The notes beneath the pieces were generated by a model. That model was given only the letters and a program-made list of their open reading frames with translations, made no database searches and was not told the origin of the DNA. A stretch of DNA of 64,000 bases from Pavona decussata (lineage: Eukaryota), in the NCBI GenBank assembly GCA_977016875.1, contig CDRNST010000251.1:1302001-1366000 (forward strand), read 5' to 3'. Of this stretch, positions 1 to 26,827 are shown piece by piece; position 1 is the stretch's first letter; every line of letters starts with the position of its first letter. A program made the translations under genes and the position numbers.

Positions 1-2595
1 GGATGGACACCACTTCATTTGTCTGTTTCGCGAGAATTCTTCAAAGTTTCCAAAGTGCTTATTGAGTCAGGATGCAACATCAACCTTCAGAAGGATGGAA
101 GTACCCCGCTACATGACGCAGTCCGGAATAATTACGAAGCACTCGTCAAATTATTGCTCATAAAAGACGCAGATGCAAATATTTCGGACACGTCTGGCTG
201 TATTCCACTTCACAGGTCTGTTGAGCGAGGATTCTTCAAAGTGTCCAAACTTCTTGTTGGTTCAGAGTGTAACATCAATTTCCAAAACAAGAACGGACGC
301 ACCCCGCTACATTATGCAGTTTGGAACAGCGATGAAGCACTCGTCAAATTGTTGCTTGAAAACAACGCAGATGCAAATATTCCAGGCACTGATGGATGTA
401 CACCACTTCATGCGTCTGCCGACCGTGGATCTTACAAAGTTTCCAAACTTCTTGTTGATTCAGGGTGCAACATCAACTCTCAGGATGAGCACGGAAGTAC
501 CCCGCTTCATAACGCAGCTTGGAGCAGTAACGTAGAACTCGTCAAATTGTTGCTGGAACAGAACGCAGACGCAAATATTCCAGATTCTTACGGAACTACT
601 CCACTTCATAGGTCTGTTGAGCGAGGAGTTTTCAAAGTTTTCAAACTTCTTCTTGAGTCAGGGTGCAATATCAACCCTCAAGTTGAGCATGGAAGCACTC
701 CGCTACATAACGCAGTTGGAAGGAGGAACGAAGCACTCGTCAAACTGTTGCTCAAAAACAACTCAGATGCAAATAAACCAGGCACTGATGGATGCACACC
801 ACTTCATATGTCTGTTGAGCGTGGATCTTACAAAGTTTCCAAACTTTTTGTTGATTCAGGGTGCAACATCAACCCTCAGGACGAGCACGGAAGTACTGCG
901 CTACATGATGCAGTTTGCAACAATGATGAAGCACTCGTCAAATTGCTGCTTGAAAACAAAGCAGATGCAAATATTCCAGGCATTGACGGATGCACACCAC
1001 TTCATGCGTCTGAGGACCGTGGATCGTACAAAGTTTCCAAACTTCTTATTGATTCAGGGTGCAACATCAACTCTCAGGATGAGCACGGAAGTACCCCGCT
1101 CCATAATGCAGTTGGCAATAATGATGAAGCACTCGTCAAATTGCTGCTTGAAAACAACGCAGATGCAAATATTCCAGGCACTGGTGGATGCACACCACTT
1201 CATGTGTCCTCTGATCGTGGATTATACAAAGTTTCCAAACTTCTTGTTGATTCAGGGTGCAACATCAGCTCTCAGGATGAGCACCGAAGTACCCCGCTAC
1301 ATAATGCAGTTGGCAATAATGATGAAGCACTCGTCAAATTGCTGCTTGAAAACAACGCAGATGCAAATATTCCAGGCACTGATGGATGCACACCGCTTCA
1401 TGCGTCTGCTGACCGTGGATTATACAAAGTTTCCAAACTTCTTGTTGATTCAGGGTGCAACATCAACTCTCAGGATGAGCACGGAAGTACCCCGCTACAT
1501 AATGCAGTTGGCAATAATGATGAAGCACTCGTCAAATTGCTGCTTGAAAACAACGCAGATGCAAATATTCCAGGCACTGATGGATGCACACCACTTCATG
1601 CGTCTGCTGACCGTGGATTATACAAAGTTTCCAAACTCCTTGTTGATTCAGGGTGCAACATCAACTCTCAGGATGAGCACGGAAGTACCCCGCTTCATAA
1701 CGCAGCTTGGAGCAGTGATGAAGAAGTCGTCAAATTGTTGCTGGAACACAACGCAGACGCAAATTGTCCAGATTCCTATGGACGTACTCCACTTCATAGG
1801 TCTGTTGAGCGAGGAGTTTTCAAAGTTTCCAAACTTCTTCTTGAGTCAGGGTGCAACATCAACCCTCAGGATGAGCACAGAAGCACTCCGCTACATAACG
1901 CAGTTGAAAAGAGGAACGAAGCACTCGTCAAACTGTTGCTCGAAAACAACGCAGATGCAGATATTCCAGGTACTGATGGATGGACACCACTTCATGTGTC
2001 TGTTGAGCGTGGATCTTACAAAGTTTCCAAACTTCTTGTTGATTCAGGGTGCAACATCAACCCTCAGGATGAGCATGGAAGTACCCCGCTTCATAACGCA
2101 GTTTGGAGCAGTAACGAAGAACTGGTAAAATTGTTGCTTGAACACAACGCAGACGCAAATATTCGAGACTCGTGTGGACGTAGTCCACTTCATAGGTCTG
2201 TTGAGCGAGGAGTTTTTAAAGTTTCCAAAGTTCTTGTTGATTCAGGGTGCAACATCAACCTCCAGGAAAAGAACGGAAGTACCCCGCTGCATAACGCAGT
2301 TTGGAATGTTGACCAAACACACGTCAAATTGTTGCTTGAAAACAACGCAGATGCAAATATCCCTGACACTTATGGATATACACCACTTCATTTGGCTGTT
2401 TTGAAAAAAGTTTCAAGAGTGTCCAAACTTCTTATTGAATCAGGGAGCAACATCAACCTAAGGGACAAAGACGGGAGCACCCCACTAGATATCGCAGAGC
2501 AAAATAATGAGGCATCTCTTCTCAAATTTTTGAAACAAAACATCGCAAAATTCATCTCTGCAAGAATCGGGTCCAAAGTGGCGTCATTTCGCTGA
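1..2595 (+). CDS. 3' part of the terminal exon of a long ankyrin-repeat gene (paralogue 1; runs off the window start)
   Basis: Frame is open from base 1 to TGA at 2593-2595. It carries about 26 ankyrin repeats with G-x-TPLH motifs in a 66-aa (198-bp) dimeric period and is nearly identical to 15243-18035. Confidence 0.93.
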   Translation, partial: GWTPLHLSVSREFFKVSKVLIESGCNINLQKDGSTPLHDAVRNNYEALVKLLLIKDADANISDTSGCIPLHRSVERGFFKVSKLLVGSECNINFQNKNGRTPLHYAVWNSDEALVKLLLENNADANIPGTDGCTPLHASADRGSYKVSKLLVDSGCNINSQDEHGSTPLHNAAWSSNVELVKLLLEQNADANIPDSYGTTPLHRSVERGVFKVFKLLLESGCNINPQVEHGSTPLHNAVGRRNEALVKLLLKNNSDANKPGTDGCTPLHMSVERGSYKVSKLFVDSGCNINPQDEHGSTALHDAVCNNDEALVKLLLENKADANIPGIDGCTPLHASEDRGSYKVSKLLIDSGCNINSQDEHGSTPLHNAVGNNDEALVKLLLENNADANIPGTGGCTPLHVSSDRGLYKVSKLLVDSGCNISSQDEHRSTPLHNAVGNNDEALVKLLLENNADANIPGTDGCTPLHASADRGLYKVSKLLVDSGCNINSQDEHGSTPLHNAVGNNDEALVKLLLENNADANIPGTDGCTPLHASADRGLYKVSKLLVDSGCNINSQDEHGSTPLHNAAWSSDEEVVKLLLEHNADANCPDSYGRTPLHRSVERGVFKVSKLLLESGCNINPQDEHRSTPLHNAVEKRNEALVKLLLENNADADIPGTDGWTPLHVSVERGSYKVSKLLVDSGCNINPQDEHGSTPLHNAVWSSNEELVKLLLEHNADANIRDSCGRSPLHRSVERGVFKVSKVLVDSGCNINLQEKNGSTPLHNAVWNVDQTHVKLLLENNADANIPDTYGYTPLHLAVLKKVSRVSKLLIESGSNINLRDKDGSTPLDIAEQNNEASLLKFLKQNIAKFISARIGSKVASFR

Positions 2596-2933: not shown

Positions 2934-3790
2934 AGTGCCCATAACGGAATTTTTTTATTTTCTCATCTGAATCTTTACATCACGCGAAGAACGTCCGCGA
3001 AAAAATTTTTCGATTTGCATGAAACGCGAATTTTTTATGAATTTAGCAAATCTCTAAAATCCTATTTTATTGCGGTCCACCCGCCCCGCTGATGAGAATG
3101 CCGACGGCTCACAATAGGGCCACGTGACATGGTCTGTGACGTACATTCAGGAACTCTCGTGTCTAAAGAAAAAAAAGAAAGAAAATCGTCAGATTCACCG
3201 GTAGGAAGGAAAAACTTAGCTCCAAATAAGTATATTCCATGGCAGAAAACTTATCTGACACGGAAAGTGAGCAAACCACTGAAGAAAGCAGCTAGAACGA
3301 ATTTGAAAGCGTCGAAGTCGAGGCGATAGATGGCGTCCACGAAACAAGTAATACGTGTGAAGATGATGATACACTCGAACCGTACGCGGACGAGCCGATA
3401 GCAGACGAAGAATGGCTAAAAACATATCACAAGGAACAAGAGGAGAAGCGACGACTCAAAGAAGATTTAACGAAACGCTTGGAGAATAGAGTGCGTGTTA
3501 GTGAATGGTAAAGTTCTCACCTTGCATTTTGCATACGCGCTCTTCATTATCATCTGTCAAAACTATGGCCAAGTACTCACATACATTCGAACGAATTATT
3601 TTCCATGTAGATGTACTTGTGGTAACTGTAGCCGTGATCTGCTAGCAAATATCAGCGAGTGCTACTGCTGCAAGGAACTCGAAGGCGATTGGGAAGCGCT
3701 GACTAGCGACATTGTTCTCGTGGAACTACAGGAGAGACACGTGTTGAACTGTGATAATAATAGCTTGTCTCGTTCTCTCAAATTTCGGCC
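2934..3790 (+). mobile_element. Truncated Kolobok-like DNA transposon end with a KolX / P2X7-ballast-like pseudogene (exons 3239-3507, 3611-~3790)
   Basis: Homology with the paralogue-2 3' flank stops exactly at its TTAA (TTAG here, 2930-2933). The element then begins AGTGCCCAT, like the TTAA-flanked MITE at 63010. Translation gives EPYADEP...EW-CTCGNC...ECYCCKE, the Cys pattern of the P2X7 C-terminal/KolX domain, with two in-frame stops. Confidence 0.7.
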
Positions 3791-3879
3791 GTAAATTTAA
3801 TTGTAGGATGGAAGTTGTTAGCTTGTCCAATGAACAGGTTAATTTCCTTTTTGTCACTGTCCCACAGTTTACCAAATCC

Positions 3880-4420
3880 ATTGTATCTTTTAGGCGCATA
3901 CGTCTTGCGAAATGTTCGAAGTCTCACAAGAGTTGGCGTCTAATGTAATTGGTGTCTGTCACCGGTGTCGCCGGGGACAAATTTGAGCCTTTAGAAATAA
4001 CGCTAACAGGCTGTCGCTAAGTTGTTTGTTTGAAAAATTCTTTATGAATTTCTCGTGTTTTTCTCTTTGTGTCTCAATCCGTTTTTAGTCAATTTTTTTC
4101 TGCGCTCTTTGCGCTTGTTATTTGTTTTGTGCCCTTTTTTATTTTGAACCCCCGTTGTGGTGGTAAGGTTTTCAGAGATAACGCTGTTATACTTTTCAAC
4201 ATTTTTATTGTTTGCAGAATTCTGCAACACATGTGCGTACAATATTTGTTTGAGCTCGTTGAATTCTTGCTGCAGTTTATCTAACTTATCTACATCGTGG
4301 TTTACAATGTTTTCTGTGTTCGCCGAGTGCGACTGTTCTCGCATCGATCTATTTACATCAGTGGTAGCATTTGTGCTAGTATTTTTTGAGAGCTTGGTCT
4401 CAACGAAACTTCGCGGATCT
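3880..4420 (-). mobile_element. Degenerate Penelope-like retroelement, N-terminal ORF fragment
   Basis: Minus-strand translation with a frameshift and a stop: basic stretch, then KNFSNKQLSD..VSVISKG....TP...DFEHFARRMRL. This matches the NLS...LxKGLxFxP...F.RRMRL motif that precedes the RT in Penelope-like elements. Confidence 0.65.
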
Positions 4421-4659
4421 CACGATCTATGAGAATATATACCAAAACAATTACGCCATATTTTATAAAACTTGCGACTGAGTTAACAGTGAGGTCAAAC
4501 TATAAACCTCAGAAGGTTACAACACTAAGAATGTCACAAGCGGTTGTGAATATTCAGTATCGAAAGCTTACCATTCGCTTTTCCCTGCTCCTCTTAGAAG
4601 TTGGCTCTTGGTCTTCGTCTTCCTTTCGCTTAGCTGTTTTAAAGGATAAACACAAATGT

Positions 4660-7378
4660 GTGAAGCTTGGCCGGCAAGTACAATTCATAAAAGGTTCTGC
4701 CCAGTTTTCCAATTGCAAATGGGTGCAAGTGGTGCATACTGCTCCAGAAGACCTCAGTAGGTACAAAGGCTACTCTGATCCCATTTCAAAGGGTGAAAAG
4801 AAACATCAGGTTGAAGTTGATCTCTGTAAAATGGCTGATCTGGTTGTGCCTGTTGGACCAAGGCTTGAAGGTTCTTACTCTTCATATCTCCGACGATGCA
4901 AGGAGAATCAGGATATTTTCACTGTAACGCCAGGTCTTTTTGAGAGGGAATTTGGGGACTTAAAACAAGCTCCTAATGAGAGTGGTGACTTTAAAGGGAT
5001 ACTCTAGACCCCAAAACAACTTTCGCTTAAAAGGTAGCATTTGTACTATAATAAAGGGTAAACGGCACATAAAGTTCAAAAGAAACAAGTAAAAGGCCTA
5101 AAATTGCCGGAGAAAGGCGAAATTTTCCCCTTTTTGAAGACCGGAAGTAAAAATCGACTTTAGTGGAGCACGTGATCGATGACGTAGAATGAAGAACCGC
5201 TATTGTTTACAACACTGAAGAGAATATGGATTCTGGGGATTAGCGCAGTTCTTTTGCTTGTTTTTCTTCCGAACAAAATAGTACAATCGAAATTGCCGAC
5301 GGAGCTATGTTAGCAGAGCTATGAGGGCGCTCTGTCGTATGTGTTTAGCCGTGTAACAGCGAAGTGAACTCGGTTACGGACTCTACAAAACGAGTGCAAA
5401 GAGGTGTTTAAGAGCGGATTGGTAAGCGACCAGTTATGCATTCTATCGCGAATTCGGTGTGTTTCACATCCGCAATGAGATTTCATTGGCGATTGAATAC
5501 GTTTTGAGTAGCATTAAAGTTTCCTTTTTATGGTACGGCGTTGTTATTTGAAATCCAGTTTAGTTACATTTTTAAAAAAAATCCACGTAAATTTTACCCC
5601 GGGAATTGGCCTGTTAGAGACACAGCGTACAAAGCTCAGCGAAAGCTTGGAGATGTGGGCAGCTTTCATTATAACGATTCACACTTTACAGGAGCGGTAC
5701 CTGTACAAACAGCAATACTACGACGAAGTCTAAGCCCATAAATAAATTCGGAAGTCATTGTGTTGTGCTGGGCCTTTTGGGACATTAAAGTTTATACCTT
5801 TCCTTCCATATTGCATATTGCGTTCTATTAATACCGCATTCGAGCTCACTTTACAGGGATTTTTTCCGCTAAGTAATGATACCGGCAATTTTTCATTGTT
5901 TGCCATTTTAAAGCAAAATAAGGCCTTTACCTTTGATATTATGCTGATTTAGAAAACGGTGTTCACCTTTGTTGGTCATTTTGCCCTGTCGCGCCGTGTA
6001 TACAGCGACTGAGTCGCGTACCTGAACTGAACAAGGTTAATGAAATAACTGCGATACTACGCGTGTTCGAAAGGTAAGCTTAAGTATCATTATCGGCTTA
6101 TGCTAGTTTTCTTCAGGCTGCACTGCAATAACAATTTCTTATTATTTTTCAAACATACAGTGAACCATAGCTAGTTCTGGTGGAGTAGCTTGTTTTGTAA
6201 TCTGTCTGGCGCGAGCGGCTTCATTGGACGTGCTGTCCTCCATCGGGCCTATGCTCTTATTTTCTGATAGTCCTTCTTTAAAACAAGATTGAAATGGCGT
6301 TTTGTGAGCTTTTCATCTTTCCACAGACACAGCTGTGATAATTTGTGGTTGAGAACAGTCTTCAGAAAAGTGAGCAGCGGTCGTGAGGTCAGCAAACAAA
6401 TCGAATCGCGTGTGTCCGAACCACCCGTACAAAACCCGAAAGAAATGCGAATTATTAAGACCTTCACCGTTGTTACTAGAATTAAGCATAGAGCAACCAT
6501 AAATCGATACGGTATTATTGAATTTTCCCCAAAACTTGAACTATACATTTTATTTTGGAATTTTAAAATCAAGCCATTTACCGAAACTTGCTAAAGAAAT
6601 CCAGAGGAATCTAACCGGAAAAGGTTTGGCGAGTTCTTCTTTCTACGTCATTTCCGGTTTTCGGCCCAAGCGCTGCTTCGAATCCCGTGACGAGAAACTT
6701 TTCGCTTTTCTAGGCAAAATAGCGGAGATCGAACTCCAAATTTGGTAAATATCTTTTATTTGGGTCATAAGCTTTCTGAATTTGGAAAGTTGTTTTGGGG
6801 GCTAGAGTATCCCTTTAAAGTGTTGTTATGTGGTCGTGGTGATGATGAAGACTTTGAACTAAAGGGATACAACATTGCTGTTGAAGCATTTTTTGATCCC
6901 CGGCTGAGAAATAAACTTTATCATCTGCTCTTTGTGGGTGCACCTGACGGAAAGCAGGATGCTGTAAGAGAAAAACTCCTCCAACGTGGTGTCGCTGAAG
7001 AGCAACTGACTGTCAGAAAGTTTGTGCAAAATAGAGAAAAGATGAAAGACTTACTGAATGAGGTTGATCTTGCTATTATGCCATCCAGATCAGAGGGATT
7101 TGGTCTTGTTGCCCTTGAAGCCCTGTCAGCTGGTTTACCTATTCTTGTTGGTAGCAAGTCTGGATTTGCTAGAGCATTAGAGAGCATTCCTTATGGAAAA
7201 TCATGGATAGTTAACTCAGATGACCCTACAAAGTGGGCAGAGGCAATTGGAGGTGTCCGTGCCAGTCATGCAGTGCGGCTTGACGAGATCAAATTTCTGA
7301 GAGCTTCTTATGACAACAAGTACAGTTGGAAGGAACAATGTGAAGCCTTTGTGGAAATGATGTGCAGAATGGTTCAAG
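4660..7378 (+). pseudogene. GT-B fold family-4 (Glycos_transf_1) glycosyltransferase exon, split by a MITE at 4995-6814
   Basis: VKLGRQ...CKWVQVVHTAPE...ADLVVPVGPRL, then IMPSRSEGFGLVALEALSAGLPILV (E-x7-E motif). Removing the insert and one TTAA restores ...SGDFKVLLCGRGDDEDFELKG. Confidence 0.88.
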
Positions 7379-10300
7379 GTATGAGTTGTTACTTGGTGTT
7401 TTTCGTTTTAATTCCAAATGCAACTGCAAATTCAGGCAGAGTAACAGACACCCTGTAGTAATTGTTATAAACACTGTTAACTCCAAGAGTAAAATTTATG
7501 GTCCTGTATCAGTTGGTTCTAACCGTTCAGTCTGTTAAAGAAATCCCATTGTGTGACTGCTAAAATGAAAATGAAAGCTATTGACCAGTACAATCTGAAA
7601 TAGTGGTTGTTTATCAAGATCGTAATAATAGTTATAGAACTTTGGATATAAAGAAAAGAATTAAAAAGTTGACACTGGCTAAAAATATATATACTGGACG
7701 TTTCGGCCACTACTGTTGCCTTCTTCAGCAAAGATAAAAATGCAAATATCTAACGGCGTCCTGCTTGGAATATGTACACGATGTGTGATAAATAAATAAA
7801 TCACACCTCGACGGAATTTCAAAGTGTAACAGTGGTCTCTAGAGTATCGTAAAGACTAAAAACTCTTAATGTTATTGTATACGTTTGGTAGCGCTATACG
7901 TTCATTTATAGAGTTTCTATCACGCACGTCGATGATCTGTCAATGATTTCAACATTCATTATTTTCAAGTGTTCAATGGGCACCATCTATATCTATTACT
8001 TGCTGATAGTGTTATTGCCCAATTGTTAAGTTTGAAATCTCATTCTTTCATGGCTCCATTAATTTTTTAAGCCTTTTACCCCTTATATCAAAGAACGTAT
8101 TCTCCTGTCTTGTCCCCATACTTTTCTTCTCAAAGTACTGGGTAGAAGCTATTAAAATATAAGCATTGATGCTGATCACTGTTAGGGAATAAAGGGCGTA
8201 GAATGAACCCAAAATATTGAATGATAGTGTCTATTTTATTTTACAGGCCCTTCCAGCACCACTATTAAAACTGCAAGGGAAGAGTCCCCTGCTGAACCGA
8301 TGCCAGCTGCAGTCACACTAGATAAAGGTCCTTCACAGAAACGTCTTCGTCTTGATGAAGAAGCGAAAGGAAAACCAAGCATTGCAGGAACCTCTTTTGA
8401 CCCTATAGGTATGGAGCTTGTTTCTTTTAGATATAAATTTAGTTGTCATCGCTCCATGAAGAAGCTTATATGTTGGGTTTCAGTTGTATTTAAGTCTGTT
8501 CCTTGGACTACCTTTTCCCTGGACTGGTCCACGGAGTTACATAAACTACAAGTAACGATTGAGCATGGTTTGAGCATGTTATATGGGGAAAGACCAAAAG
8601 AAACAAGAAAAGACAAAAAAGTGATTAATCTTTCTGAGCAGCGAAATTTGGCAAATATGAACTACATGTATGATGGTGTCTCGATCACACGATCGGAAAT
8701 TACGGAAGGTGGTAGGACTTGGTTCTATCTTCTGCAGTTGTCTGCGATCATATCATTGCGATCTGCGATAGGTCCGATAGCTATGATTCAGACTACGAGA
8801 GAGGCATTGCTGTTGTTTTTGATTTTCTACATGGAAGTGCTTATAGTCAAACGTAGCACTCAACTTCCGTTTTGGATATATTCCTTTCCTTGGCTACCGA
8901 GTCCTCCATCTTTGTGTAATTGTGAGTCATCCAAGCCGTGATTTTATGGCAACACGACGGAGCCATCACCTTTTCGCTGTAGCGCATAAGAAAAAAAAAA
9001 ATAAACATGGCATGCTAATGATTACATGTAACATTCCATGTGTGAGAGAGGTTATGGCATAGTGGTGAGAGCACTGGCTATTCAAAAGTGTGGCACGGGT
9101 TGGATTCCCGTATTTCACGTAATATATGGGTTTAGTTTGTTGTTGTGACTCGTCCTTGCTTTGACAGTTTGTCTCCAGATTCTGCAGTTCTCCTCCTTCC
9201 ACAAGAGGCAACTATGTGAATTCCAAGCTGAGCAGGAATCTGAGGACCAGTTGTTAGACTAGCTGCTTAGTAACACCCTCGTTAAATTAATATTAATCAT
9301 TTCATTTTAATTTTTGCAGAGAAGTACATGTATATCTACAAATGAAATGGCTAGGTCAAATGACTCAACTCAGCCAACAGAATGGAAATATTGCACTTTA
9401 GAGACAGCTTAATTCATGTACAGTATTTGGACATGTACATATAAGAAGGTCTATAACACTTACGTGAATTTCACGTTGATTTCAGATACTCTTATCAAGC
9501 TTTTCATCAGCACCCAAGGTCTAAATGAAGAACAACAACAAACAGTCCATGCAATGTTAGCACTTCAAGCACAGACGTATGTGAAATCCCACAACCTTTC
9601 CACAGCTGAACTGGAACCAGTGGGAGCCCTGATTGAATTTTTAGAAAAGGCTTACCACTTGGCCCTTGTGTCCGTTAACGTGGGCTCTTTGGAAATTGTA
9701 GTGCGATGCCCTAACCTAGAAAGTCTTCAGCGTCTGTGGAGTGACTATCTCTCTGGTCGCCTCAATGAAGAAGTTGAGAGGCACCTTATGACTGAGGAAA
9801 TCAAGAGGAAACTGAACCTGGAGACGGTTAGATTGAAGACAACCATAGAAGAGGGAAATTACTTGATGTGCAGGAAGGCTTTCATGGAAATGTCAGGTAC
9901 GTTTTAGTGATAGTTCAAGGAGTTTTTTATTGAATGGAAATCAGAAGCTCAGCTGTAGCATTTTAAGTAAAGAAACAATTTAAATACCTGTTTTTTCGAG
10001 ACGTACCGCAGGGAAACGAAACGTAACGCGTTGTGGTCAAATGGCCAAAATAATATCTCCTCGGTTGCCACGGTAAGGGAAAGTCACGGAAACTGATTTT
10101 TTTGAAGGTCTAGGAAAAGTAGGGCAATACTGCATGAAGTCAGTAAAATTTTCGTTCTACTTAAAGTCAGTGAAAAGAAAATGAATTTTATTTTTGGCTA
10201 GCCGCTAGGTTCGTGAAAGAGTGTTCTTGTTGTCAAAGGTAGTGGATCCTAAAATTACAAAAGGAAAAGGTCCAATAGTTAGCGTAGTTAGCGGGGTGGT

Positions 10301-13300
10301 AAATCAAGTCTTATAAAGAAGGTGGGGCATGATTTTATTTCAGATCTGTTGGCTATGGATATTTAACACACATTGACCAAATATTGAGCTCTTAATTGAA
10401 TCTTGTGCCACATGCTCTCCTGCAATAGCCGGGAAGACAAAACTAGCGCGTTTACGTTTTTGTTGACTATAATTACAAAAATACAAAGTAACTGGCATTA
10501 TTGGTATCTGTAAAAGGCGTCTGATATATGTGATGGTGCATTTTTGCATAGTGTCGGCTTCAAAATGCATCCAATGAAAGCGTGTATTTATTCACTGACT
10601 CATACTCAGGTTCTTTACAAATCACATAATTTTCAATTTTTTAAGGTTACCATATACCTTTAGAGCTGTCCCGCGTTCAAGAGATGTAGCGCGTCCGGTT
10701 TAAACTGAACTCTTATATCAAATTAAAGCTCATAGGGTTGGCTATCAAAACTATACCAAGAATTTTGAAATAAAGTCAATTGTCGAATTTTTCACGACCT
10801 CTAAATGTGAGCGTCCGAATCACCTTTTGAAAGCTACAAGTCGAGCGAATTTTATTTTTCGCTAATTTAATTTGCTCCTCAGTTGCTGGAACCAAAGCGC
10901 TAAAAAAACGTGTCTGCGTTTTGCCATATTCAATCGCAGTGAAAAGTTACAGAACATTTTCGAAATAGGATAAAAAAAGTGTGGAGTGTTCGTACAAAAA
11001 TCGCTCTCGGAGAAAAAATATTTTGAAAGAAAATAATCGCGGAAACGGTTTTGTTCTTTATATGTTAAACTAGCTACTGTCCAAATATGAAGGCAAGCGA
11101 ACAAATTCCCTGTGAGTTTTAGCTCTTTAAAGTGTCTCCTCCAAGTAAAAAAAATTGATTCGAGAAAACAGTGCTAAACATTCGGCAATTCATTTTATTT
11201 CAAAATTCTTGGTATAGTTTAATAGCCAGCTCTACATGTATAAGCTTTAATTTGATATATGGGTTTAGGTATCTACAGTTTAAACTGGACGCGCTACATC
11301 ACCGCTACATCGCTTGGACGCCAGACACCTCTGATGGTATAGGGTAACCTTAAAAGCCAAAACGTCTCCGTATTACTAGACATGGCATTTACGTGATATG
11401 TAGGTTACCGTATTCTTTTACATAATCTTCTAAATTGAAATTATGAAAATTTAGTTTGAAACACTTATAGCAACCGTCCTAGCAATCAGTCGGCTTCTGG
11501 CACAATAGTGATCATGGTGTTTGGGAAATTATCATGCTTGAAAATCAATTTTTGTACTCTTTTTGCTGCAATATCTAGAGACCAAAGCAATTATTCGGTG
11601 TTTGTTCTTAGATCTGTAAAATCAAGGTAATTTAGGACATGGAACTCCATTTTGCTCAAGGTTTCCCTGCTATATAAAATTTACTTTTTGGTTCCTTAGC
11701 AGAAACCTTGTAAATATTTCCTCAGTAGGTCGGTTTGTATGTTGCCCCCCTTTTTAGTTTCTACCTCCGAAAAAGTCGAAGGTTTACAGTGCAGCAGCCT
11801 ATCCTTTGTTTTTCTCAGTTGCCCGTGCTCTTTGACTCCATTTTTAACTTTCATGTAGCGTTTAGTGGTTGAACCAGTTGAAATATGCACTTTTTCTGGC
11901 CCTTGTAAATGTCTTCCAAGGCGTATCCAGGACTACTGAATACAGTTCCGACATTTTGAGCTCTTTTACTGTTTCTATATTTTTTTTTTATATCCAAACG
12001 TAGCAGACAGAACTCACTTTCCACCTCAACAAACTGAGCCAGATGGGGAAGCGAGCACAAGTTCAGATTATCAGGAAGTAAGACGTTATGTTTTTGTTCA
12101 TTTTTAAATAACTATTGAAAAGTACATTCAGGTATGAACTGGCTGAGTAGTGTGCAAGTCGAATGCCGAATTGTTAGAAACCTGCACTGTTTCATCACCT
12201 TAAATGGATACTTAAAGTCAAAGTTTACCATCATCACATTCATCATCTATATTATTATTTGCTACTTTGTGCATTCTCTTTTAATTCCTATTCCGAGGAG
12301 GGTACCCTGCAAGAAGAGACGCCTTATCCGTGTTTTGTTTCACTCTCAGTTATACTATAATTTGTCGTATACCACCATCAGTAATGACGGGGTGTATTTG
12401 TCAGTCATGGTGATGATGACTATAGCTATAACGGAGTGCAGAGCGCATCATCGGTTTTAAATTATCAATAGAATTCCTTGTGTCAAGTTTTTGTTATGCC
12501 ATTTCAGGAGAAGAAACAGGACATGAGCTGGATAATTAGAGGTGAAAAGGCCAAAGTGAGTTCCAGTTGATAAAAAAATATATATTTGCTTTGTTGTTTG
12601 GAACTTTAAGTTTATCGCGGTCGACAATAGGAGACCGCAAGTCTAACTTTGTGTTTGCGTTCCGCTCCCTGTGCAAGTGCATGCGGAACAAATCGAGGTT
12701 GGCGGCCATTTTGTTTCTCTGTCACGCAAATTTACCTCGTTTTGATGCAAGAATCTGGCCTCATTTTCACGTGAAGATATGCGGTCTATCAAATTGGCAT
12801 GTCGACCGCACTTTTTAATCTGTGATTACTATTACTATTTTAAGGGTATTTCCACCTTAATTTTATGTAGAGTTGAACTCAGATTCAGAATATCACGTTG
12901 GGAAACAATTAATTTTTAAATGGGCAGTAACCAGAAGGTTTACAAGTAGGAAATAGGGAGGAGTGGAATTAGTGGATTATTTTTTTAGGATTTGAAGTTC
13001 TTATATGTTGGTTTTTTTTTTTTTAACAGTCATCAAGACGTGCACTGCACAAAGCTGCCATTAATGGACAGTACGAGACTGTGAAAATGCTTCTTTCCAG
13101 TGGTGAAGATGTGGACCTAAGAGACCAGGTTTTAATTTCCTTCGATTCTGGTTGTCACTTTTTTCTCATGTTTTCTTTTTTTCCGGCTTTTTATGTGCAT
13201 AAAATCTTGCACAATGTTTCCGTATCATCTGTACTTTACTGTGCCCGTATCCTTTGTTAAATATTCTTTATTCAAACATACCCGCGCCCGTATCTTTGTA

Positions 13301-16300
13301 AGTGTGTAAATGTTTCCTCTCGTACGACACGTAGTAGGTTGTGCATTGTTTGAACCTAAACTTTCTGCTCATTGTTGATTTTTATCGCAGTTTTCTTTGA
13401 CACCTCTTCACCTTGCCTGTTGGTATGGACAGGAATCTGTTGTCAGACTGTTGTTAGAACATGGTGCAAACGTCAATGCTGTAGACAGGGTGAGTTGGTT
13501 AGCTAAGTTAAACCTCTTCCATTACCTTGTTAGCCTGTTCATCAATTTTTTTATTGTTACAGAAAGGCAACGTAGTTTTCAACTCCTGTCAGATGTCCAG
13601 TAGCCAAGACCTGTGTTGGGGGTGCTATTACATCTTTAAAGAGTGCCGCCAATTTATCTCAAGCTACAGTATTTCGTAAAAGCTCCACAGCATTCTTTAG
13701 CAACTGTAATTTCCAGTGTTTGCTGAAAACTGTGCATCCTTCACGTGCATATACCCGCACAGGAAATATAAAAGTGTGTTGGCCCGTCTACTTGACATTC
13801 TTCGTTTGTTTTTAGTTTCAACGTACACCTATGCAGAAAGCTGAACGTCACAATCATCAATCCATAGTGCAGTTGCTTCTGAAGAATAATGCGAGACCAA
13901 GTTATCAACAGCCGGTAAGTTATAAAACCGTTTTCTCGCCATTGCCTCTTTGCGAACTATCCTAGGATGACTAGAGCAGAATCCTGTTGGTATTTATTAG
14001 TTATAGGTTGAATATAGTTTGACTGCTTACTAAAATTAAGCTGCCATTCAGATTTCTGTACACAACACAGGGAAACCGCTAATAATTGGCTGGGATACAA
14101 ACTGGTGTTATTTCGGTCTCTTGTGAATCACCATCAAACATAAGCGACTTCTCTTTCTAATCTTGTGTGGAAGCTTTCCAGACCTTTATCTGCAACTTAA
14201 AAAGTATTCAGGTGTTATTGCTCTTCATAAAATGACTATAATTCAACTCTTTCGTGCCGGCAGTTGTTGTTTCTGTTGCCAGTTTCAATTGTCACCATCA
14301 ACAGGTAGTGCGTGATGTTATGCCGATTTTACACTATCTTGAACGTTTTCATTGCAGCCCAGTCTGAAGACATTAGCACGGGAGACTATTTTGCGTGTGG
14401 AAGGACGGTCGGGTTTTAATCTGCTACAAGCAGCTGTCTATGAAGGGGACTATGGTATGGTTGTCAAACTGCACGTGTTTCTTGGTAACGTCGTAAAAAT
14501 GATGAAGTTAGAAACCACAGGAAACGACGCCAAAGTTTTTCCGAGAAAGACTGCAGTTGATATGCTATTAAGCATTGACGACAAAAAGCCAGGCCATGAT
14601 GAGATCTGCACACTCTACCAAGACATGGTCGAGAAAGTCAACACACTATCAGAGTTACACTGCTGTGCACGGAGTGATGATGCAGAAAAAGTGATAGAAC
14701 TCGTGTTGAATGATGGTATGGATATTAATGTTCCCGCAATGTGCAATATTACACCTCTGATCTTAGCGAGTCCATCGTCTTCAAGTATGTTGATCAAGAC
14801 CCTCATTGATCTTGGCGCTGACGTTAATGCCCAAAGAACCGATGAGAGGTGGGTACCTTTGTTGTTGGCGGCGTCTTGGAACAACTACACTACTGCTCGC
14901 CTACTTTTGGAGCATGAGGCTGATGCTAATATTCAAGCTCTTGATGGATGTGCCCCATTGCACTACTCTGTCCGTCATGAATTTGTCAAGGTTTCTCAGC
15001 TTGTTGTTGATTCAGGATGTAACGTCAACCTACTGAACAAGAACGGACGCACCCCACTAGATATTGCAGTTGAGAACATTGATGAAACGCTCGTCCGTTT
15101 GTTGCTAAAAAACAACGCAGATGCAAATGTTCAGGACACTTGTGGATGCACACCACTTATTAGGGCAGTTTTGGAGAATAATGAAGCGCTCGTCAAATTG
15201 TTGCTTGAAAACAACGCAGATACAAGTATTCCTGATCGTGATGGATGGACAGCACTTCATTTGTCTGTTTCGCGAGAATTCTTCAAAGTTTCCAAAGTGC
15301 TTATTGAGTCAGGGTGCAACATCAACCTTCAGAAGGATGGAAGTACCCCGCTACATGACGCAGTTCGGAATAATTACGAAGCACTTGTCAAATTATTGCT
15401 CATAAAAGACGCAGATGCAAATATTTCGGACACGTCTGGCTGTACTCCACTTCACAGGTCTGTTGAGCGAGGATTCTTCAAAGTGTCCAAACTTCTTGTT
15501 GAGTCAGAGTGTAATATCAATTTCCAAAACAAGAACGGACGCACCCCGCTACATTATGCAGTTTGGAACAGCGATGAAGCGCTCGTCAAATTGTTGCTTG
15601 AAAACAACGCAGATGCAAATATTCCAGGCACTGATGGATGTACACCACTTCATGCATCTGCCGACCGTGGATCTTACAAAGTTTCCAAACTTCTTGTTGA
15701 TTCAGGATGCAACATCAACTCTCAGGATGAGCACGGAAGTACCCCGCTTCATAACGCAGCTTGGAGCAGTAACGTAGAACTCGTCAAATTGTTGCTGGAA
15801 CAGAACGCAGACGCAGATATTCCAGATTCTTACAGAAGTACTCCACTTCATAGGTCTGTTGAGCGAGGAGTTTTCAAAGTTTTCAAACTTCTTCTTGAGT
15901 CAGGGTGCACCATCAACCCTCAGGATGAGCATGGAAGCACTCCGCTACATAATGTAGTTGGAAGGAGGAACGAAGCACTCGTCAAACTGTTGCTTAAAAA
16001 CAACGTAGATGCAAATAAACCAGGCGCTGATGGATGCACACCACTTCATATGTCTGTTGAGCGTGGATCTTACAAAGTTTCCAAACTTTTTGTTGATTCA
16101 GGGTGCAACATCAACCCTCAGGATGAGCACGGAAGTATTCCGCTACATAATGCAGTTTGCAACAATAATGAAGCACTCGTCAAATTGCTGCTTGAAAACA
16201 ATGCGGATGCAAATATTTCAGTCACTGACGGATGCACACCACTTCATGCATCTGCTGACCGTGGATCTTACAAAGTTTCCAAACTTCTTATTGATTCAGG

Positions 16301-18035
16301 GTGCAACATCAACTCTCAGGATGAGCACGGAAGTACCCCGCTACATAATGCAGTTGGCAATAATGATGAAGCACTTGTCAAATTGCTGCTTGAAAACAAT
16401 GCGGATGCAAATATTCCAGGCACTGATGGATGCACACCACTTCATGCGTCTGCTGATCGTGGATTATACAAAGTTTCCAAACTTCTTGTTGATTCAGGGT
16501 GCAACATCAACTCTGAGGATGAGCACGGAAGTACCCCGCTACATAATGCAGTTGGCAATAATGATGAAGCACTCGTCAAATTGCTGCTTGAAAACAAGGC
16601 AGATGCAGATATTCCAGGCACTGATGGATGCACACCGGTTCATGCGTCTGCTGACCGTGGATTATACAAAGTTTCCAAACTTCTTGTTGATTCAGGGTGC
16701 AATATCAACTCTCAGGATGAGCACGGAAGTACCCCGCTACATGATGCAGTTGGCAATAATGATGAAGCACTCGTCAAATTGCTGCTTGAAAACAACGCAG
16801 ATGCAAATATTCCAGGCACTGATGGATGCACACCACTTCATGTGTCTGCTGACCGTGGATCTTACAAAGTTTCCAAACTTCTTGTTGATTCAGGGTGCAA
16901 TATCAACTCTCAGGATGAGCGCGGAAGTACCCCGCTTCATAACGCAGCTTGCAGCAGTGACGAAGAACTCATCAAATTGTTGCTGGAACACAAGGCAGAC
17001 GCAAATTTTCCAGATTCTTATGGACGTACTGCACTTCATAGGTCTGTTGAGTGCGGAGTTTTCAAAGTTTCCGAAGTTCTTCTTGAGTCAGGGTGCAACA
17101 TCAACGCTCAGGATAAGCACGGAAGAACTCCACTACAAAACGCAGTTGAAGAGAGGAACGAAGCACTCGTCAAACTGTTGCTGGAAAACAACGCAGATGC
17201 AGATATTCCACGTACTGATGGATGGACACCACTTCATGTGTCTGTTGACCGTGGATTATACAAAGTTTCCAAACTTCTTATTGATTCTGGGTGCAATATC
17301 AACTCTCAGGATGCGCACGGAAGTACCCCGCTACATAATGCAGTTGGCAATAATGATGAAGTACTCGTCAAATTGCTGCTTGAAAACAACGCAGATGCAA
17401 ATATTTCAGGTAGTGGTGGATGCACACCACTTTATGTGTCTGTTGAGCGTGCATCTTACAAAGTTTCCAAACTTCTTGTTGATTCAGGGTGCAACATCAA
17501 CCTTCAGAATGAGCATGGAAGTACCGCGCTTCATAACGCAGTTTGGAGCAGTGACGAAGAACTGGTAAAATTGTTGCTCGAACACAACGCAGATGCAAAT
17601 ATTCCAGACTCTTATGGACGTACTCCACTTCATAGGTCTGTTGAGCGAGGAGTTTTCAAAGTTTCCAAACGTCTTGTTGATTCAGGGTGCAACATCAACC
17701 TCCAGGAAAAGAACGGAAGTACCCCGCTGCATAACGCAGTTTGGAACGTTGACCAAACACACGTCAAATTGTTGCTTAAAAATAACGCAGATGCAAATAT
17801 CCCTGACACTGATGGATATACACCACTTCATTTGTCTGTTTTGAAAAAAGTTTTAAGAGTTTCCAAACTTCTTATTGAATCAGGGTGCAACATCAACCTA
17901 AGGGACAAAGGCGGGAGCACCCCACTAGATATCGCAGAGCAAAATAATGATGCATCTCTTCTCAAATTTTTGAAACGAAACATCTCAAAATTCATCTCTG
18001 CAAGAATCGGTTTCAAAGTGGCGTCATTTCGCTGA
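4660..18035 (+). CDS. Multi-exon GT4 glycosyltransferase - TRADD-N-like - ankyrin-repeat gene (paralogue 2), 5'-truncated and MITE-interrupted. Exons: ~4660-4994/6819-7378, 8247-8408, 9486-9896, 12004-12077, 13030-13128, 13391-13489, 13816-13914, 14358-18035
   Basis: All introns are GT-AG with matching phases (1,1,1,0,0,0,0) and the joined frame is open once the MITE is removed. It contains a GT4 signature, a GSL...LWxDY.SG.L domain, three 99-bp single-ankyrin exons and a 3.7-kb ankyrin terminal exon. Confidence 0.75.
4995..6814. mobile_element. Non-autonomous TIR DNA transposon with TTAA TSD (Kolobok-like, purine termini)
   Basis: TIR AGGGATACTCTAG(A/C)CCCCAAAACAACTT at both ends; TTAA at 4991-4994 and 6815-6818; interrupts an open exon. 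Confidence 0.92.
7694..7731 (-). ncRNA. Minimal type-I hammerhead ribozyme motif (Penelope-associated type)
   Basis: Minus strand reads ttg-CTGAAGA-aGGC-aacagtagtg-GCC-GAAA-CGTC-cag: catalytic core, stem II, palindromic ACGT stem III and a GUC cleavage triplet. Confidence 0.6.
9055..9290 (+). mobile_element. Degenerate tRNA-derived SINE in an intron
   Basis: A-box-like ggcatagtggtgagagcact and B-box-like gggttggattccc, followed by a SINE-core-like body. Confidence 0.5.
9486..9896 (+). CDS. Exon encoding a TRADD-N-like (DEDD C-terminal-like) domain
   Basis: LEKAYHLALVSVNVGSLEIVVRCPNLESLQRLWSDYLSGRLNEEVERHLMTEEIKRKLNLETVRLKTTIEE. The GSL...L..LW.DY.SG.L pattern is typical of this fold. Phase-1 splice sites on both sides. 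Confidence 0.7.
10645..11349. mobile_element. MITE with long TIRs and TTAA TSD
   Basis: ttaa-GGTTACCATATACC...GGTATAGGGTAACC-ttaa, with about 140 bp of imperfect inverted arms. Confidence 0.85.
14358..18035 (+). CDS. Terminal exon with ~33 ankyrin repeats
   Basis: 1227-aa ORF; acceptor ttgcag at 14352-14357; 198-bp higher-order repeat over about 15.3-17.9 kb. Confidence 0.93.
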   Translation, partial: PSLKTLARETILRVEGRSGFNLLQAAVYEGDYGMVVKLHVFLGNVVKMMKLETTGNDAKVFPRKTAVDMLLSIDDKKPGHDEICTLYQDMVEKVNTLSELHCCARSDDAEKVIELVLNDGMDINVPAMCNITPLILASPSSSSMLIKTLIDLGADVNAQRTDERWVPLLLAASWNNYTTARLLLEHEADANIQALDGCAPLHYSVRHEFVKVSQLVVDSGCNVNLLNKNGRTPLDIAVENIDETLVRLLLKNNADANVQDTCGCTPLIRAVLENNEALVKLLLENNADTSIPDRDGWTALHLSVSREFFKVSKVLIESGCNINLQKDGSTPLHDAVRNNYEALVKLLLIKDADANISDTSGCTPLHRSVERGFFKVSKLLVESECNINFQNKNGRTPLHYAVWNSDEALVKLLLENNADANIPGTDGCTPLHASADRGSYKVSKLLVDSGCNINSQDEHGSTPLHNAAWSSNVELVKLLLEQNADADIPDSYRSTPLHRSVERGVFKVFKLLLESGCTINPQDEHGSTPLHNVVGRRNEALVKLLLKNNVDANKPGADGCTPLHMSVERGSYKVSKLFVDSGCNINPQDEHGSIPLHNAVCNNNEALVKLLLENNADANISVTDGCTPLHASADRGSYKVSKLLIDSGCNINSQDEHGSTPLHNAVGNNDEALVKLLLENNADANIPGTDGCTPLHASADRGLYKVSKLLVDSGCNINSEDEHGSTPLHNAVGNNDEALVKLLLENKADADIPGTDGCTPVHASADRGLYKVSKLLVDSGCNINSQDEHGSTPLHDAVGNNDEALVKLLLENNADANIPGTDGCTPLHVSADRGSYKVSKLLVDSGCNINSQDERGSTPLHNAACSSDEELIKLLLEHKADANFPDSYGRTALHRSVECGVFKVSEVLLESGCNINAQDKHGRTPLQNAVEERNEALVKLLLENNADADIPRTDGWTPLHVSVDRGLYKVSKLLIDSGCNINSQDAHGSTPLHNAVGNNDEVLVKLLLENNADANISGSGGCTPLYVSVERASYKVSKLLVDSGCNINLQNEHGSTALHNAVWSSDEELVKLLLEHNADANIPDSYGRTPLHRSVERGVFKVSKRLVDSGCNINLQEKNGSTPLHNAVWNVDQTHVKLLLKNNADANIPDTDGYTPLHLSVLKKVLRVSKLLIESGCNINLRDKGGSTPLDIAEQNNDASLLKFLKRNISKFISARIGFKVASFR

Positions 18036-18529
18036 GATGGTGAGAGGAGGCCATCTCCTACATAAACCAGCAAGGCCCTGACTTCTAAGCATGGAAGAGA
18101 AGACAGAAACACCAGGATCAGACAAAGGAGACGTATTACCGCCTAAATCTGCTGGTATGCCCCATGATATTATCACAGAAACACTAGAAGTGTCACTGGT
18201 GAAACAACAAACGCCAGAGCTAGAGACAAATGTAGGGCAAGAAAAAGAAAAGCCATAATTGTCAGAGGAAATGCAGATAAACAAGAAGAAACACAGGCCA
18301 GAGTAATAGCGTTCAATCATGGTAATAGGAGAGAGTGGATTCCAGTTCAGTCTGTAATAACATGAGTCCTTAACCCCTCAGAGTCAACAACATGAACGGA
18401 AGTCCGATTAGTTTACCTAATTACTCGTAACAGCTCTGCAGTGTTGATTAAATTTTTGGACTTTTGCTGGAGCGCTTATTGGAGGCGCTAATTTAATGCC
18501 GCTGTTTTACAAGCCGCAATTTACGGCTT

Positions 18530-23809: not shown

Positions 23810-25560
23810 GATCATTATCAGTAGCTGGGCACAGACCCTTATATAAAAAGGGCTAGTAATATAACAAATGACCACCGTATATAACTCAGTGCCAACAAAC
23901 AACCCTATATAAATACATAACTGAAAAAAGACCATATATAAGTAAACGGCTTTTATAAGACATGCGGCGATTATGAGACATATTACAAACGGCGATTATA
24001 AGACGCCTTATAAACGGCGCTTATAAGACGCCTTACAAACCGCGATTATAACACTCCTTATAAACCGCGATTTTAAGACGCCTTATAAACGGCGATTATG
24101 AGACATATTTCAAACGGCGATTATAAGAACGCCTTATAAACGGCGATTATAAGACGCCTTATAAACCGCGATGATAACACTCCCTATAAACCGCGATTTT
24201 AAGACGCCTTACAAACCGCGATTATAAGACGCCTTACAAACCGCGATTATAAGACGCCTTATGAACAGGGATTATAAGACTCCTTATAAACCGCGATTTT
24301 AAGACGCCTTACAAACCGCCATTATAAGACTCCTCATAAACCGCGATTTTAAGACGCCTCACAAACCGCGATTATAAGGCGCCTTATGGACAGGGATTAT
24401 AAGACTCCTTACAAACCGCGAATGTAAGACTCCTTATAAACCGCAATTTTAAGACGCCTTATAAACCGCGATGATAAGACTTCAAGACTCCTTGAACTCC
24501 TTATAAACGGCGCTTATAAGACTTATGAACAGGGATTATAAGACTCCTTACAAACCGCGATTATAAGACGCCTTACGAACAGGGATTATAAGACTCCTTA
24601 CAAATCGCGAATGTAAGACTCCTTATAAACCGCGATTTTAAGACGCCTTATAAACGGTGATTATAAGACGCCTTATGAACAGGGATTATAAGACTCCTTA
24701 TAAACCGCGATTATAAGGTGCCTTATGGACAGGGATTATAAGACTCCTTACAAACCGCGAATGTAAACGCCATTTTAAGACGCCTTATAAACGGCGATTA
24801 TAAGACGCCTTATGAACAGGCATTATAAGACTCCTTATAAACTGCGATTTTAAGACACCTTACAAACCGCGATTATAAGACTCCTTATAAACCGCGATTT
24901 TAAGACGCCTTATAAACAGCGATTATAAGACATCTTACAAACCGCGATTATAAGACATCTTACAAACCGCGATTATAAGACTCCTTATAAACCGCGATTT
25001 TAAGACGCCTTATAAACAGCGATTATAAGACATCTTACAAACCGCGATTATAAGACATCTTACAAACCGCGATTATAAGACTCCTTATAAACCGCGATTT
25101 TAAGACGCCTTACATACCGCGATTATAAGACTCCTTAAAAACGGCGATTATAAGACTCCTTATAAACCGCGATTAAAAGACTCCTTACAAACCGCGATTT
25201 GAAGACTCCTTATAAACAGCGATTATAAGACAACTTACAAACGGCGATTATAAGACGCTTTATAAACGGCGATTATAATACTCCTTACAAACCGCGATTA
25301 TAAGACTTCTTATAAACGGCGATAATAATACTCCTTACAAACGGCGATTTTAAGACTCTTTACAAACGGCGATTATAAGACTCCTTATAAACGGCGATTA
25401 TAAGACTTCTTATAAGCGGCGATTACAAGACGCCTTATAAGCGGCGATTACAAGACGCCTTATAAACGGCGATTATAAGACTGCTAATAAGACTCTTTAC
25501 AAACGGCGATTGTGACTCCTTATCAGCGGTGATTCGATTATAAGACTCCTAATAAACGGC
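23810..25560 (+). repeat. Left arm: ~125-bp terminal inverted repeat plus 25-bp tandem array (TTATAAGACGCCTTATAAACCGCGA)
   Basis: About 60-65 units; reverse complement of 58100-59928. Confidence 0.93.
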
Positions 25561-26827
25561 GATCATCCATAAACGGCGTCTTTACGTCTTTAACGCCGTT
25601 TCTAAGATTTCTTATCAAATTGATCGTAAGAACGCTAAACCTTATGAACGCTTTTGCTAATTCCATACGAAAACTGTTCTTTCGGAACACGTTTTCGTTA
25701 CGAAAATCGACTTTTAAATCGCCAGATTAAGGGTCCTTACGCTTTAAGATTTGTCGATTTACGAACCCGTGAAGTCGTCTGCCCCCATAGCACACAATTA
25801 CCATATCTTTCATGTAGGTTTTGTTAAGTTTTATTTCTTAATACTAACCCATTATTACATTAATAAATAGTAAATAAAACAAAGTAATCAATAGTGTTTC
25901 TTTTAAAAATGCCTAATTTAGATTCAAATGTCAACCCATCAAAAAGCATGAAATTTGATTTTCGGTTCTTTTCAGAAAAATAAGTGGACATTGTTATCTG
26001 TTTTAGGAAAGTTACAATTAAATATTGGAGATACCGTCACAAAAATCTTATCGGGTGAGATGATTTAAGCATCTTTGTGCTTCTAATAATCTGGGCGTTT
26101 TTCACACCCAAACCCTGGGTTACCGTAAACTTTAATTCTAAGTTAATAACTAGTCAATACGGATGATGCACAAGAGTCTGTCATATGGTATCGAGAATAG
26201 TAAAAGTTAGACTATTTTGTGGCATCTCCAATTGGGTATTTATTACTGGTACATAAACAGTGGATCTCGATCGAATCGCACAATCTTCAAAAAAGAACTG
26301 AAGTGAACATCTAAGGAAAGCCAAACAAAATACAATGGAAACAGGGCCTGGTTTTTCGAGTAACGATAAACCGAGCTTTACGATGCCTTTGGCAAGTGTT
26401 CTAGATGAAAAAAAAAGTTATTTACATAAATGAACAGCAAAAGGCGTAATGCGTTGTAATAAAAATACTGTAATTATGTTTCTTGGTTGTTGAATGTCAC
26501 CTATGAAGTAAAAAAAAAAGAGAGAGAGAACATACGGCATGAGTCTATTGTAGTTTTCGTGTTGGGTATTTCATCCTTATTTTACTTACATGAACAAATG
26601 TACAATCAAATTGTTTTTCAACTAATTTTGACTTTTGCACCGAATTTAAGCCCTCCTTGCCCACTAGATGGTTTTGCGAAATCAATGCTCGTTTAATGGC
26701 AGGATCCTTGTTGCTAAGGCCTTATTCACGGAGAAAAGAACAGTACTGCACATTTAAAAAAAAAAAACAGAAAAACCCATAGTGAGTGATGCACGTAGTG
26801 ATACTTACAGCTCCGCTGTTGTCTTGG

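Follow-up and report, generated by a model that had tools for sequence, protein, structure and literature searches.

A 64,000-nucleotide stretch of the genome of the coral Pavona decussata (the window; positions 1302001-1366000 of contig CDRNST010000251.1, hereafter C251) contains a gene copy that joins the remains of a GT4-type glycosyltransferase (GT) to a TRADD-N domain and a giant ankyrin array. Most probably (about 0.8), it is a copy of a coral-expanded GT4/TRADD-N/ankyrin family of the DEDD2 type that does without a STAND NTPase, and its effector module would be disabled. Because the GT exon is broken while the TRADD-N and ankyrin exons are undamaged and appear constrained, the copy reads either as a recently disabled member or as the source of an enzyme-less TRADD-N-ankyrin protein.

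Positions given without a contig name are those of the window. Similarity searches covered 602 Mb of genome and were run exon by exon rather than with the joined protein as the query. Across the locus, the open stretches scanned on the + strand match the Pfam families GT4-conflict, TRADD-like_N, and ankyrins.

Two transposons in the glycosyltransferase exon

In three paralogues the whole GT4 domain is encoded by one stop-free exon of ~450 codons: at C251:~1216k and contig C170:~127k (~446-449 codons, beginning MSQEVPEPK or similar), and in an upstream duplicate, copy A (C251:1269730-1271046). The initial annotation had joined a GT4 domain in phase to the exons downstream; the window does not contain an intact one. 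Matches to GT4-conflict (PF20706) fall instead in two separate open stretches, 4390-5004 (profile positions 102-197) and 6691-7455 (197-384), so that profile positions ~102-385 alone are represented.

Homology to the intact paralogues begins abruptly at 4658, with ~108 codons and the ATG missing and the homologous start codon absent. Residues 1-125 of the paralogue open reading frame (ORF), start codon and glycine-rich N-terminal loop included, were not found anywhere in the window by tblastn, and the first ~108 residues of the GT-B fold were not found in the 38 kb upstream, except in copy A's own exon. In their place stands the initial 1.7 kb of a dispersed element that is ~2.3 kb long when complete and is bounded by 112-bp terminal inverted repeats (at least 439 candidate copies, of which 40 were scored, at 93-96% identity). 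Other copies extend ~550 bp beyond this and close with their first 112 bp in inverted orientation; this one breaks off exactly where GT homology starts. The interval 4390-4657 was considered as a degenerate GT N-terminus and rejected: it is part of this element, and tblastn found no trace there of paralogue residues 1-125.

A second insertion, 4997-6812, splits what is left. In the paralogue alignment position 4996 adjoins 6814, and the paralogue sequence is continuous across the insertion site. The insert ends in inverted repeats of ~27 bp and lies between directly duplicated 8-bp sequences (CTTTAAAG; 4989-4996 and 6813-6820). Other contigs carry at least 30 full-length copies of it (87-96% identity); it is therefore a non-autonomous DNA transposon. 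It brings an in-frame stop at 5005-5007 and is without canonical intron boundaries. The reading of 5005-6810 as an intron was rejected, since the paralogues are continuous there and the insert, with its terminal inverted repeats and 8-bp target duplication, belongs to a dispersed repeat.

Of the two Rossmann-like halves of a retaining CAZy GT4 glycosyltransferase, then, the C-terminal half is kept and most of the N-terminal half is missing; a complete N-terminal GT4 (GT-B) domain is found in the paralogues and copy A. The EX7E motif (E-x7-E, from our own reading of the translation) lies in remnant part 2, the C-terminal half. The proposal that an effector is coupled directly to an ankyrin sensor thus does not hold for the window copy, because its GT exon is both 5'-truncated and split by a transposon.

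Exons downstream of the glycosyltransferase

The initial annotation proposed eight exons joined in phase. Its splice sites hold up: AG precedes all seven acceptors (8247, 9486, 12004, 13030, 13391, 13816, and 14358), the donor after 7378 is GTATGAG in phase 1, and donor enumeration finds in-phase donors at 8408, 9896, 12077, 13128, 13489, and 13914. Exon ends and phases are mutually compatible from the linker to the terminal exon, and RefSeq coral proteins align to the locus exons in the same order. Its GT part is not intact, as described above, and it overlooked a 48-nt exon (Table 1). The frame of this mini-exon is open, the exon is kept in copy A and at C251:~1221.5k, and its residues match those just before the first ankyrin in P0003, a RefSeq model from Montipora capricornis. 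All eight exons 3' of GT have open frames, about 1,550 codons in total, and their splice sites are intact.

In the linker, only residues ~2-69 of the open stretch are also open in the paralogues. As read from the translation, the linker exon includes at 8330-8365 a basic stretch of the KRLRLDEE type, similar to a monopartite nuclear localisation signal.

Table 1. Features of the locus (window coordinates; P numbers denote RefSeq relatives, X5 an RNA run)
Feature	Position	Strand	Basis
3' part of copy A giant ankyrin exon	1..2595	+	stop-free 1-2592, then stops; Ank_2 2e-220; 93% identical to 15243-17739
Truncated dispersed element, in place of GT exon 5' end	2934..4656		repeat copies; paralogue homology from 4658
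GT4 exon remnant part 1	4658..4996	+	PF20706 1.6e-17; 89-94% identical to intact paralogue exons
1.8-kb non-autonomous DNA transposon inside GT exon	4997..6812		inverted repeats, 8-bp duplication, dispersed copies
GT4 exon remnant part 2	6813..7378	+	PF20706 1.1e-37; Glycos_transf_1 7e-17; donor 7378/GT, phase 1
Linker exon, 54 codons, low complexity	8247..8408	+	phase 1 to 1; donor TAG/GTATGG; RNA joint 8408>9486
TRADD-N-like domain exon, 137 codons	9486..9896	+	PF20694, predicted fold (AlphaFold2), RNA joint 9896>12004
Acidic spacer exon	12004..12077	+	phase 1 to 0; donor GAA/GTAAGA; 271-nt X5 RNA contig joins both neighbours
48-nt mini-exon	12508..12555	+	phase 0 to 0; AG/../GTGAGT; RNA joints 12077>12508, 12555>13030
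Single-ankyrin exon 1, 99 nt	13030..13128	+	Ank 4.5e-6; phase 0 to 0; RNA contig matches exon limits exactly
Single-ankyrin exon 2, 99 nt	13391..13489	+	Ank 1.7e-11; donor AGG/GTGAGT; 74-77% identical to P0003, P0005
Single-ankyrin exon 3, 99 nt	13816..13914	+	donor CCG/GTAAGT, phase 0; 68-75% identical to P0003, P0005
Terminal exon: ~125-residue spacer, 33 ankyrins, stop	14358..18035	+	Ank_2 6e-280; repeat register; 198-bp period
Segment duplicated upstream	8490..18372	+	blastn, ~96% identity to C251:1295296-1304932

The TRADD-N exon

The open stretch 9413-9904 gives a sub-threshold match to TRADD-like_N: the exon itself scores 21-21.5 bits against PF20694, for which the Pfam cut-off is 23.7 bits. 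The exon has 463 relatives; 50 were aligned and 46 of these match PF20694 (best, 1.5e-12). An AlphaFold2 (AF2) model of the exon (predicted local distance difference test, pLDDT, 89.6) has as its best structural match the N-terminal domain of human TRADD, 1F3V chain A, with a Foldseek probability of 0.98 and a template-modelling (TM) score of 0.51. Comparison with 1F3V (VIA) gives Z 8.8, with a root-mean-square deviation of 3.2 across 110 residues; generic ferredoxin-like folds score two units lower. A profile made from the alignment matched no PDB sequence, even at E=10. The assignment, which agrees with that first proposed, is therefore based on Pfam matches to relatives together with the predicted fold, the exon's own score being below the cut-off; on these grounds a TRADD-N domain follows GT4, as in other members. 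Its DEDD2-clade label is taken from the P0007 row of Kaur et al. 2021. The exon's relatives occur with GT4, ankyrins, HEPN, or polyubiquitin.

Vertebrate TRADD-N binds the MATH domain of TRAF2. An ORF with a TRAF-type zinc finger (2.5e-8) lies at 52900-53535, 35 kb downstream of the TRADD-N gene array, and in view of that binding it may deserve attention.

Ankyrin exons and a conserved spacer

The repeat part of the gene is as initially described: three ankyrins, a spacer, and about 33 more ankyrins. Single ankyrin matches fall in the open stretches 13027-13257 and 13379-13600, and each of three short exons (acceptors 13030, 13391, and 13816) encodes one repeat. The open stretch 14343-18032 (1230 residues) is filled with ankyrins; within it, the big exon encodes 33 regular 33-residue repeats behind a spacer of ~125 residues, with a DNA period of 198 bp repeated 13.7 times. 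The C-terminal array thus comprises 3 + 33 repeats.

The spacer (14358-14732) is the best-conserved part of the protein across coral relatives, with a mean column identity of 70% vs 41% for TRADD-N, and shares 46-65% identity with 11 coral proteins. It can be read as ankyrin-like helices that enclose an insert of ~55 residues. Its AF2 model, from a 12-sequence alignment, is unusable (pLDDT 46.6). Precomputed Pfam lists of relatives include PF28177.

No NACHT or NB-ARC module

The absence of a P-loop NTPase exon between GT and the repeats, noted at the outset, is borne out by every search. No NACHT or NB-ARC Pfam match occurs in + strand open stretches of at least 60 residues across the locus; no Walker A motif occurs in an open frame in the window, where every such string has stops on its flanks; tblastn with three NACHT ORFs from the same genome finds nothing in the window below E=1; and a whole-genome search with PF05729 finds nothing in the window. 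From TRADD-N to the first ankyrin there are only 24 + 16 = 40 residues, and none of the 10 TRADD-N exon relatives scanned contains NACHT. The evidence supports the conclusion that the family layout of GT4, TRADD-N, and ankyrins leaves no room for, and shows no trace of, a STAND NTPase. Of the hallmarks of NLR and other STAND proteins, the locus thus lacks the central NACHT or NB-ARC P-loop NTPase and has the C-terminal repeat sensor (ankyrins) with an effector or adaptor module upstream (GT4 remnant and TRADD-N).

Elsewhere in the genome, on contig C64, GT4 exons have NACHT exons on their own strand at a distance of 13-15 kb (for example, 3164146-3178870 and 2447225-2463699). These are probably classical GT-NACHT-repeat coral NLRs, a separate branch.

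An upstream duplicate and a tandem family

The initial annotation postulated tandem amplification, which is supported, and recommended inspection of the upstream paralogue. TRADD-N exons form head-to-tail arrays, with ~20 on the + strand of C251 (1.02-2.11 Mb, a span of 1.1 Mb) and ~10 on the - strand of C170. GT4 candidates genome-wide number at least 205. The window segment 8490-18372 is repeated 15.2 kb upstream as copy A, the end of which occupies positions 1-2592, and whose GT exon is intact. The linker exon of copy A lies at 1271750-1272046, and about 23 kb of ORFs separate it from the copy's TRADD-N exon. Introns of the two copies are 2.5-4.6% diverged (~3.5%). Their exons differ by 12 synonymous and 11 nonsynonymous changes: synonymous divergence (dS) is ~0.03, nonsynonymous divergence (dN) ~0.008, and dN/dS ~0.26, a ratio that points to purifying selection on the TRADD-N and ankyrin exons.

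The ORFs at C251:1275399-1293779 include an HNH_3 endonuclease (8e-17), a 1314-residue ORF with no Pfam match, an 830-residue ORF with a weak T7-tail-like stretch, an integrase plus chromodomain, and a parvovirus-VP1-type phospholipase A2 domain (6.7e-10). They look like nested mobile or viral-like insertions.

Farther along the window, an open stretch at 42353-42826 encodes an ISXO2-like DDE transposase domain (1e-15), and internally repeated DNA at 23943-25563 and 28431-29155 (~80-87% self-identity at many offsets) forms tandem arrays of short units.

Spliced RNA joints

RNA contigs from four runs (X1, X2, X3, and X5) were compared with positions 7130-13129. In X2 and X5, depth tracks the exons and falls to zero in introns at 8530-9329, 11530-11929, and 12130-12329. 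Contigs from these runs span the joints 7378>8247 (an 868-nt skip) and, with GT..AG ends, 8408>9486, 9896>12004, and 12555>13030, all equal to the predictions. A single 271-nt X5 contig runs from the end of the TRADD-N exon through 12004-12077, the 48-nt piece, and 13030-13128 to 20 nt beyond. The junctions first proposed are thus seen as far as the spacer exon, and ankyrin exon 13030 is reached by way of the mini-exon. Runs X1 and X3, which are metatranscriptomes, are uninformative because they cover introns and contain no spliced joints. That all parts are present in one transcript is a matter of chained joints at the level of the family, drawn from short contigs that cannot be assigned to the window copy. 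Letters diagnostic of the window copy are 7377A, 9715C, 9728C, 12015C, 12522C, and 13106A.

In the intron regions 7930-8129 and 10530-11330, RNA contig depth ranges from hundreds to more than ten thousand in each of the four runs; these regions are probably expressed dispersed repeats.

Disabled, dead, divided, or intact?

Several observations weigh against the reading of a disabled copy whose downstream exons remain under constraint. The GT remnant carries no lesion beyond the two transposons, its dN/dS against intact paralogues is ~0.28-0.29, and its count of private amino-acid changes is ordinary; since it shows no excess of amino-acid change, the lesions would be young, or could be specific to the assembled haplotype. 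A putative cryptic in-frame splice pair, 4984/GT .. AG/6821, could remove the second transposon at a cost of four codons. The RNA contigs are not assignable to the window copy: of four GT>linker joints, the two that have 'T' or 'GAT' between differ from the window's CAAG ('T' gives the paralogues' CATG), and contigs across the TRADD-N exon mix copy-A-type and window-type letters. Finally, no biochemical function is known for any family member (PMC8195603, PMC12314368).

It is possible, though on the wrong side of even odds, that the whole copy is a dead pseudogene, with all of the RNA derived from the upstream duplicate and further paralogues. The copy has lost its start codon and its promoter-proximal exon, the second transposon bears a stop, copy A retains the intact GT exon, and half of the GT>linker joints have letters that the window does not, one with the CATG of the paralogues. 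Against this stand the eight open downstream exons with their splice sites, and the pairwise dN/dS, which is lower than the ~0.6 expected had one copy drifted neutrally since the duplication, although few changes were counted and gene conversion could produce the same pattern.

It is highly improbable that the GT remnant forms a transcription unit apart from the TRADD-N/ankyrin exons, with no fusion. No single RNA contig runs from the GT exon to the ankyrins, and the spliced joints missing from X1 and X3 fit such a division; but in X2 and X5 overlapping joints connect GT to linker, linker to TRADD-N, and TRADD-N through the spacers to ankyrin, all phases are compatible, and RefSeq has single-gene models in three coral species. 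Least probable of all, to the point of being nearly dismissible, is an intact gene in which TRADD-N links a working GT4 effector to the ankyrin sensor: the Rossmann half that bears EX7E, the C-terminal one, is kept and conserved, an in-frame ATG at 4531 in the transposon fragment reads into the remnant, and the cryptic splice 4984>6821 would bypass the second insert, yet the N-terminal GT-B residues are absent from the window and from the upstream DNA (copy A aside), and the inserted stop lies in DNA without canonical intron boundaries.

A working model

In intact members, a ~450-codon exon encodes the whole GT4 domain; small exons, the linker, TRADD-N, and two short spacers; three 99-nt exons, one ankyrin each; and a 3.7-kb exon, the conserved spacer and ~33 ankyrins. 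The product is a modular protein that has no STAND module and belongs to the innate-immunity or conflict type. In the scheme of Kaur et al. 2021, the array of variable ankyrins would bind ligand, TRADD-N would recruit partners (by analogy with the binding of the TRAF2 MATH domain by human TRADD-N), and GT4 would be the effector, glycosylating a target. In the window copy, the truncated transposon takes the place of the promoter-proximal ~108 codons and ATG, which would disable the effector, and the second, 1.8-kb transposon splits the remainder and adds a stop. The copy may be heading toward a pseudogene, or may be expressed as an enzyme-less TRADD-N-ankyrin protein. GT-less relatives with TRADD-N and ankyrins are predicted in other corals (P0006, P0009, and P0060).

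A broader idea is that transposons have repeatedly removed the enzyme module in this family, yielding effector-less TRADD-N-ankyrin proteins that would serve as decoys or regulators of full-length GT4 receptors, the window copy being caught in the act and still constrained. This is an unlikely generalisation.

Reef corals carry large, lineage-specific immune-type expansions, of which this family is one; it would represent a natural sensor-adaptor-effector arrangement without a STAND motor, and as such is already in the literature. The contribution of this locus is modest: an exact map of the exons, the 48-nt one among them, with junctions backed by RNA. It also illustrates the remodelling of array members by transposons and by a segmental duplication of 10 kb, which matters when gene copies and pseudogenes are counted in the immune repertoires of corals.

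Comparison with known systems

The layout put forward in the initial annotation has been described before. Kaur et al. 2021 (eLife, PMC8195603) reported the pairing of GT4 with TRADD-N in cnidarians, amphioxus, and hemichordates, and proposed GT4 as an effector. The Fig. 4 source data of that paper (Kaur, Burroughs, Iyer & Aravind 2021) list 'GT4-GTase+TRADDN-DEDD2+Ankyrin' for Acropora digitifera LOC107355329, LOC107333936, and LOC107344415. Acropora glycos_transf_1 genes with ankyrin or TPR repeats, mostly without NACHT and clustered on one chromosome, were reported in DNA Res 2025 (PMC12314368). Given these reports and the RefSeq single-gene models, both architecture and gene cluster are already published, and the locus adds a new, damaged member rather than a new architecture.

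The same architecture is present in RefSeq coral proteins from Montipora and Acropora. Annotation pipelines, which were expected to split such genes, have kept GT4-conflict and ankyrins in one protein in models from Montipora capricornis, Acropora digitifera, and A. muricata (1005-1659 residues), and all four models with a scanned N-terminal part contain TRADD-like_N (E<=0.002). Three M. capricornis proteins (P0002, P0003, and P0005; 1386-1659 residues) resemble the locus exon by exon: GT, linker, TRADD-N, spacers with the mini-exon, three ankyrins, spacer, and array. They differ in having an intact GT4 domain (profile positions 3-385) and, at 48-69% identity, are paralogue-level relatives from another genus. 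A. digitifera LOC107355329, of which isoform X6 (1388 residues) is sequence match P0007, shares the domain order and the lack of an NTPase, with identities of 50% (spacer), 46% (TRADD-N), and 62-71% (GT pieces). It has about ten ankyrins before the spacer, whereas the window copy has three, a longer 33-repeat array, and a GT exon that is 5'-truncated and split by a transposon.

The Acropora 'glycos_transf_1 and ankyrin' cluster (PMC12314368) likewise consists of tandem GT and ankyrin genes mostly without NACHT, comparable to the arrays on C251 and C170; TRADD-N is unmentioned in that paper, and the likeness is one of description. The N-terminal domain of human TRADD (PDB 1F3V and 1F2H) has the same alpha/beta sandwich as the model of the coral exon over the 110 aligned residues. 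The two are only 16% identical, the coral exon has no attached death domain, and TRAF binding is putative here. Coral NLRs with an N-terminal Glycos_transf_1 domain (GT-NACHT-LRR, with leucine-rich repeats) share with the window gene a GT4-type N-terminal module and a C-terminal repeat array. The window gene differs from them in its lack of NACHT or NB-ARC, in the TRADD-N domain at its middle, and in the use of ankyrins rather than leucine-rich repeats.

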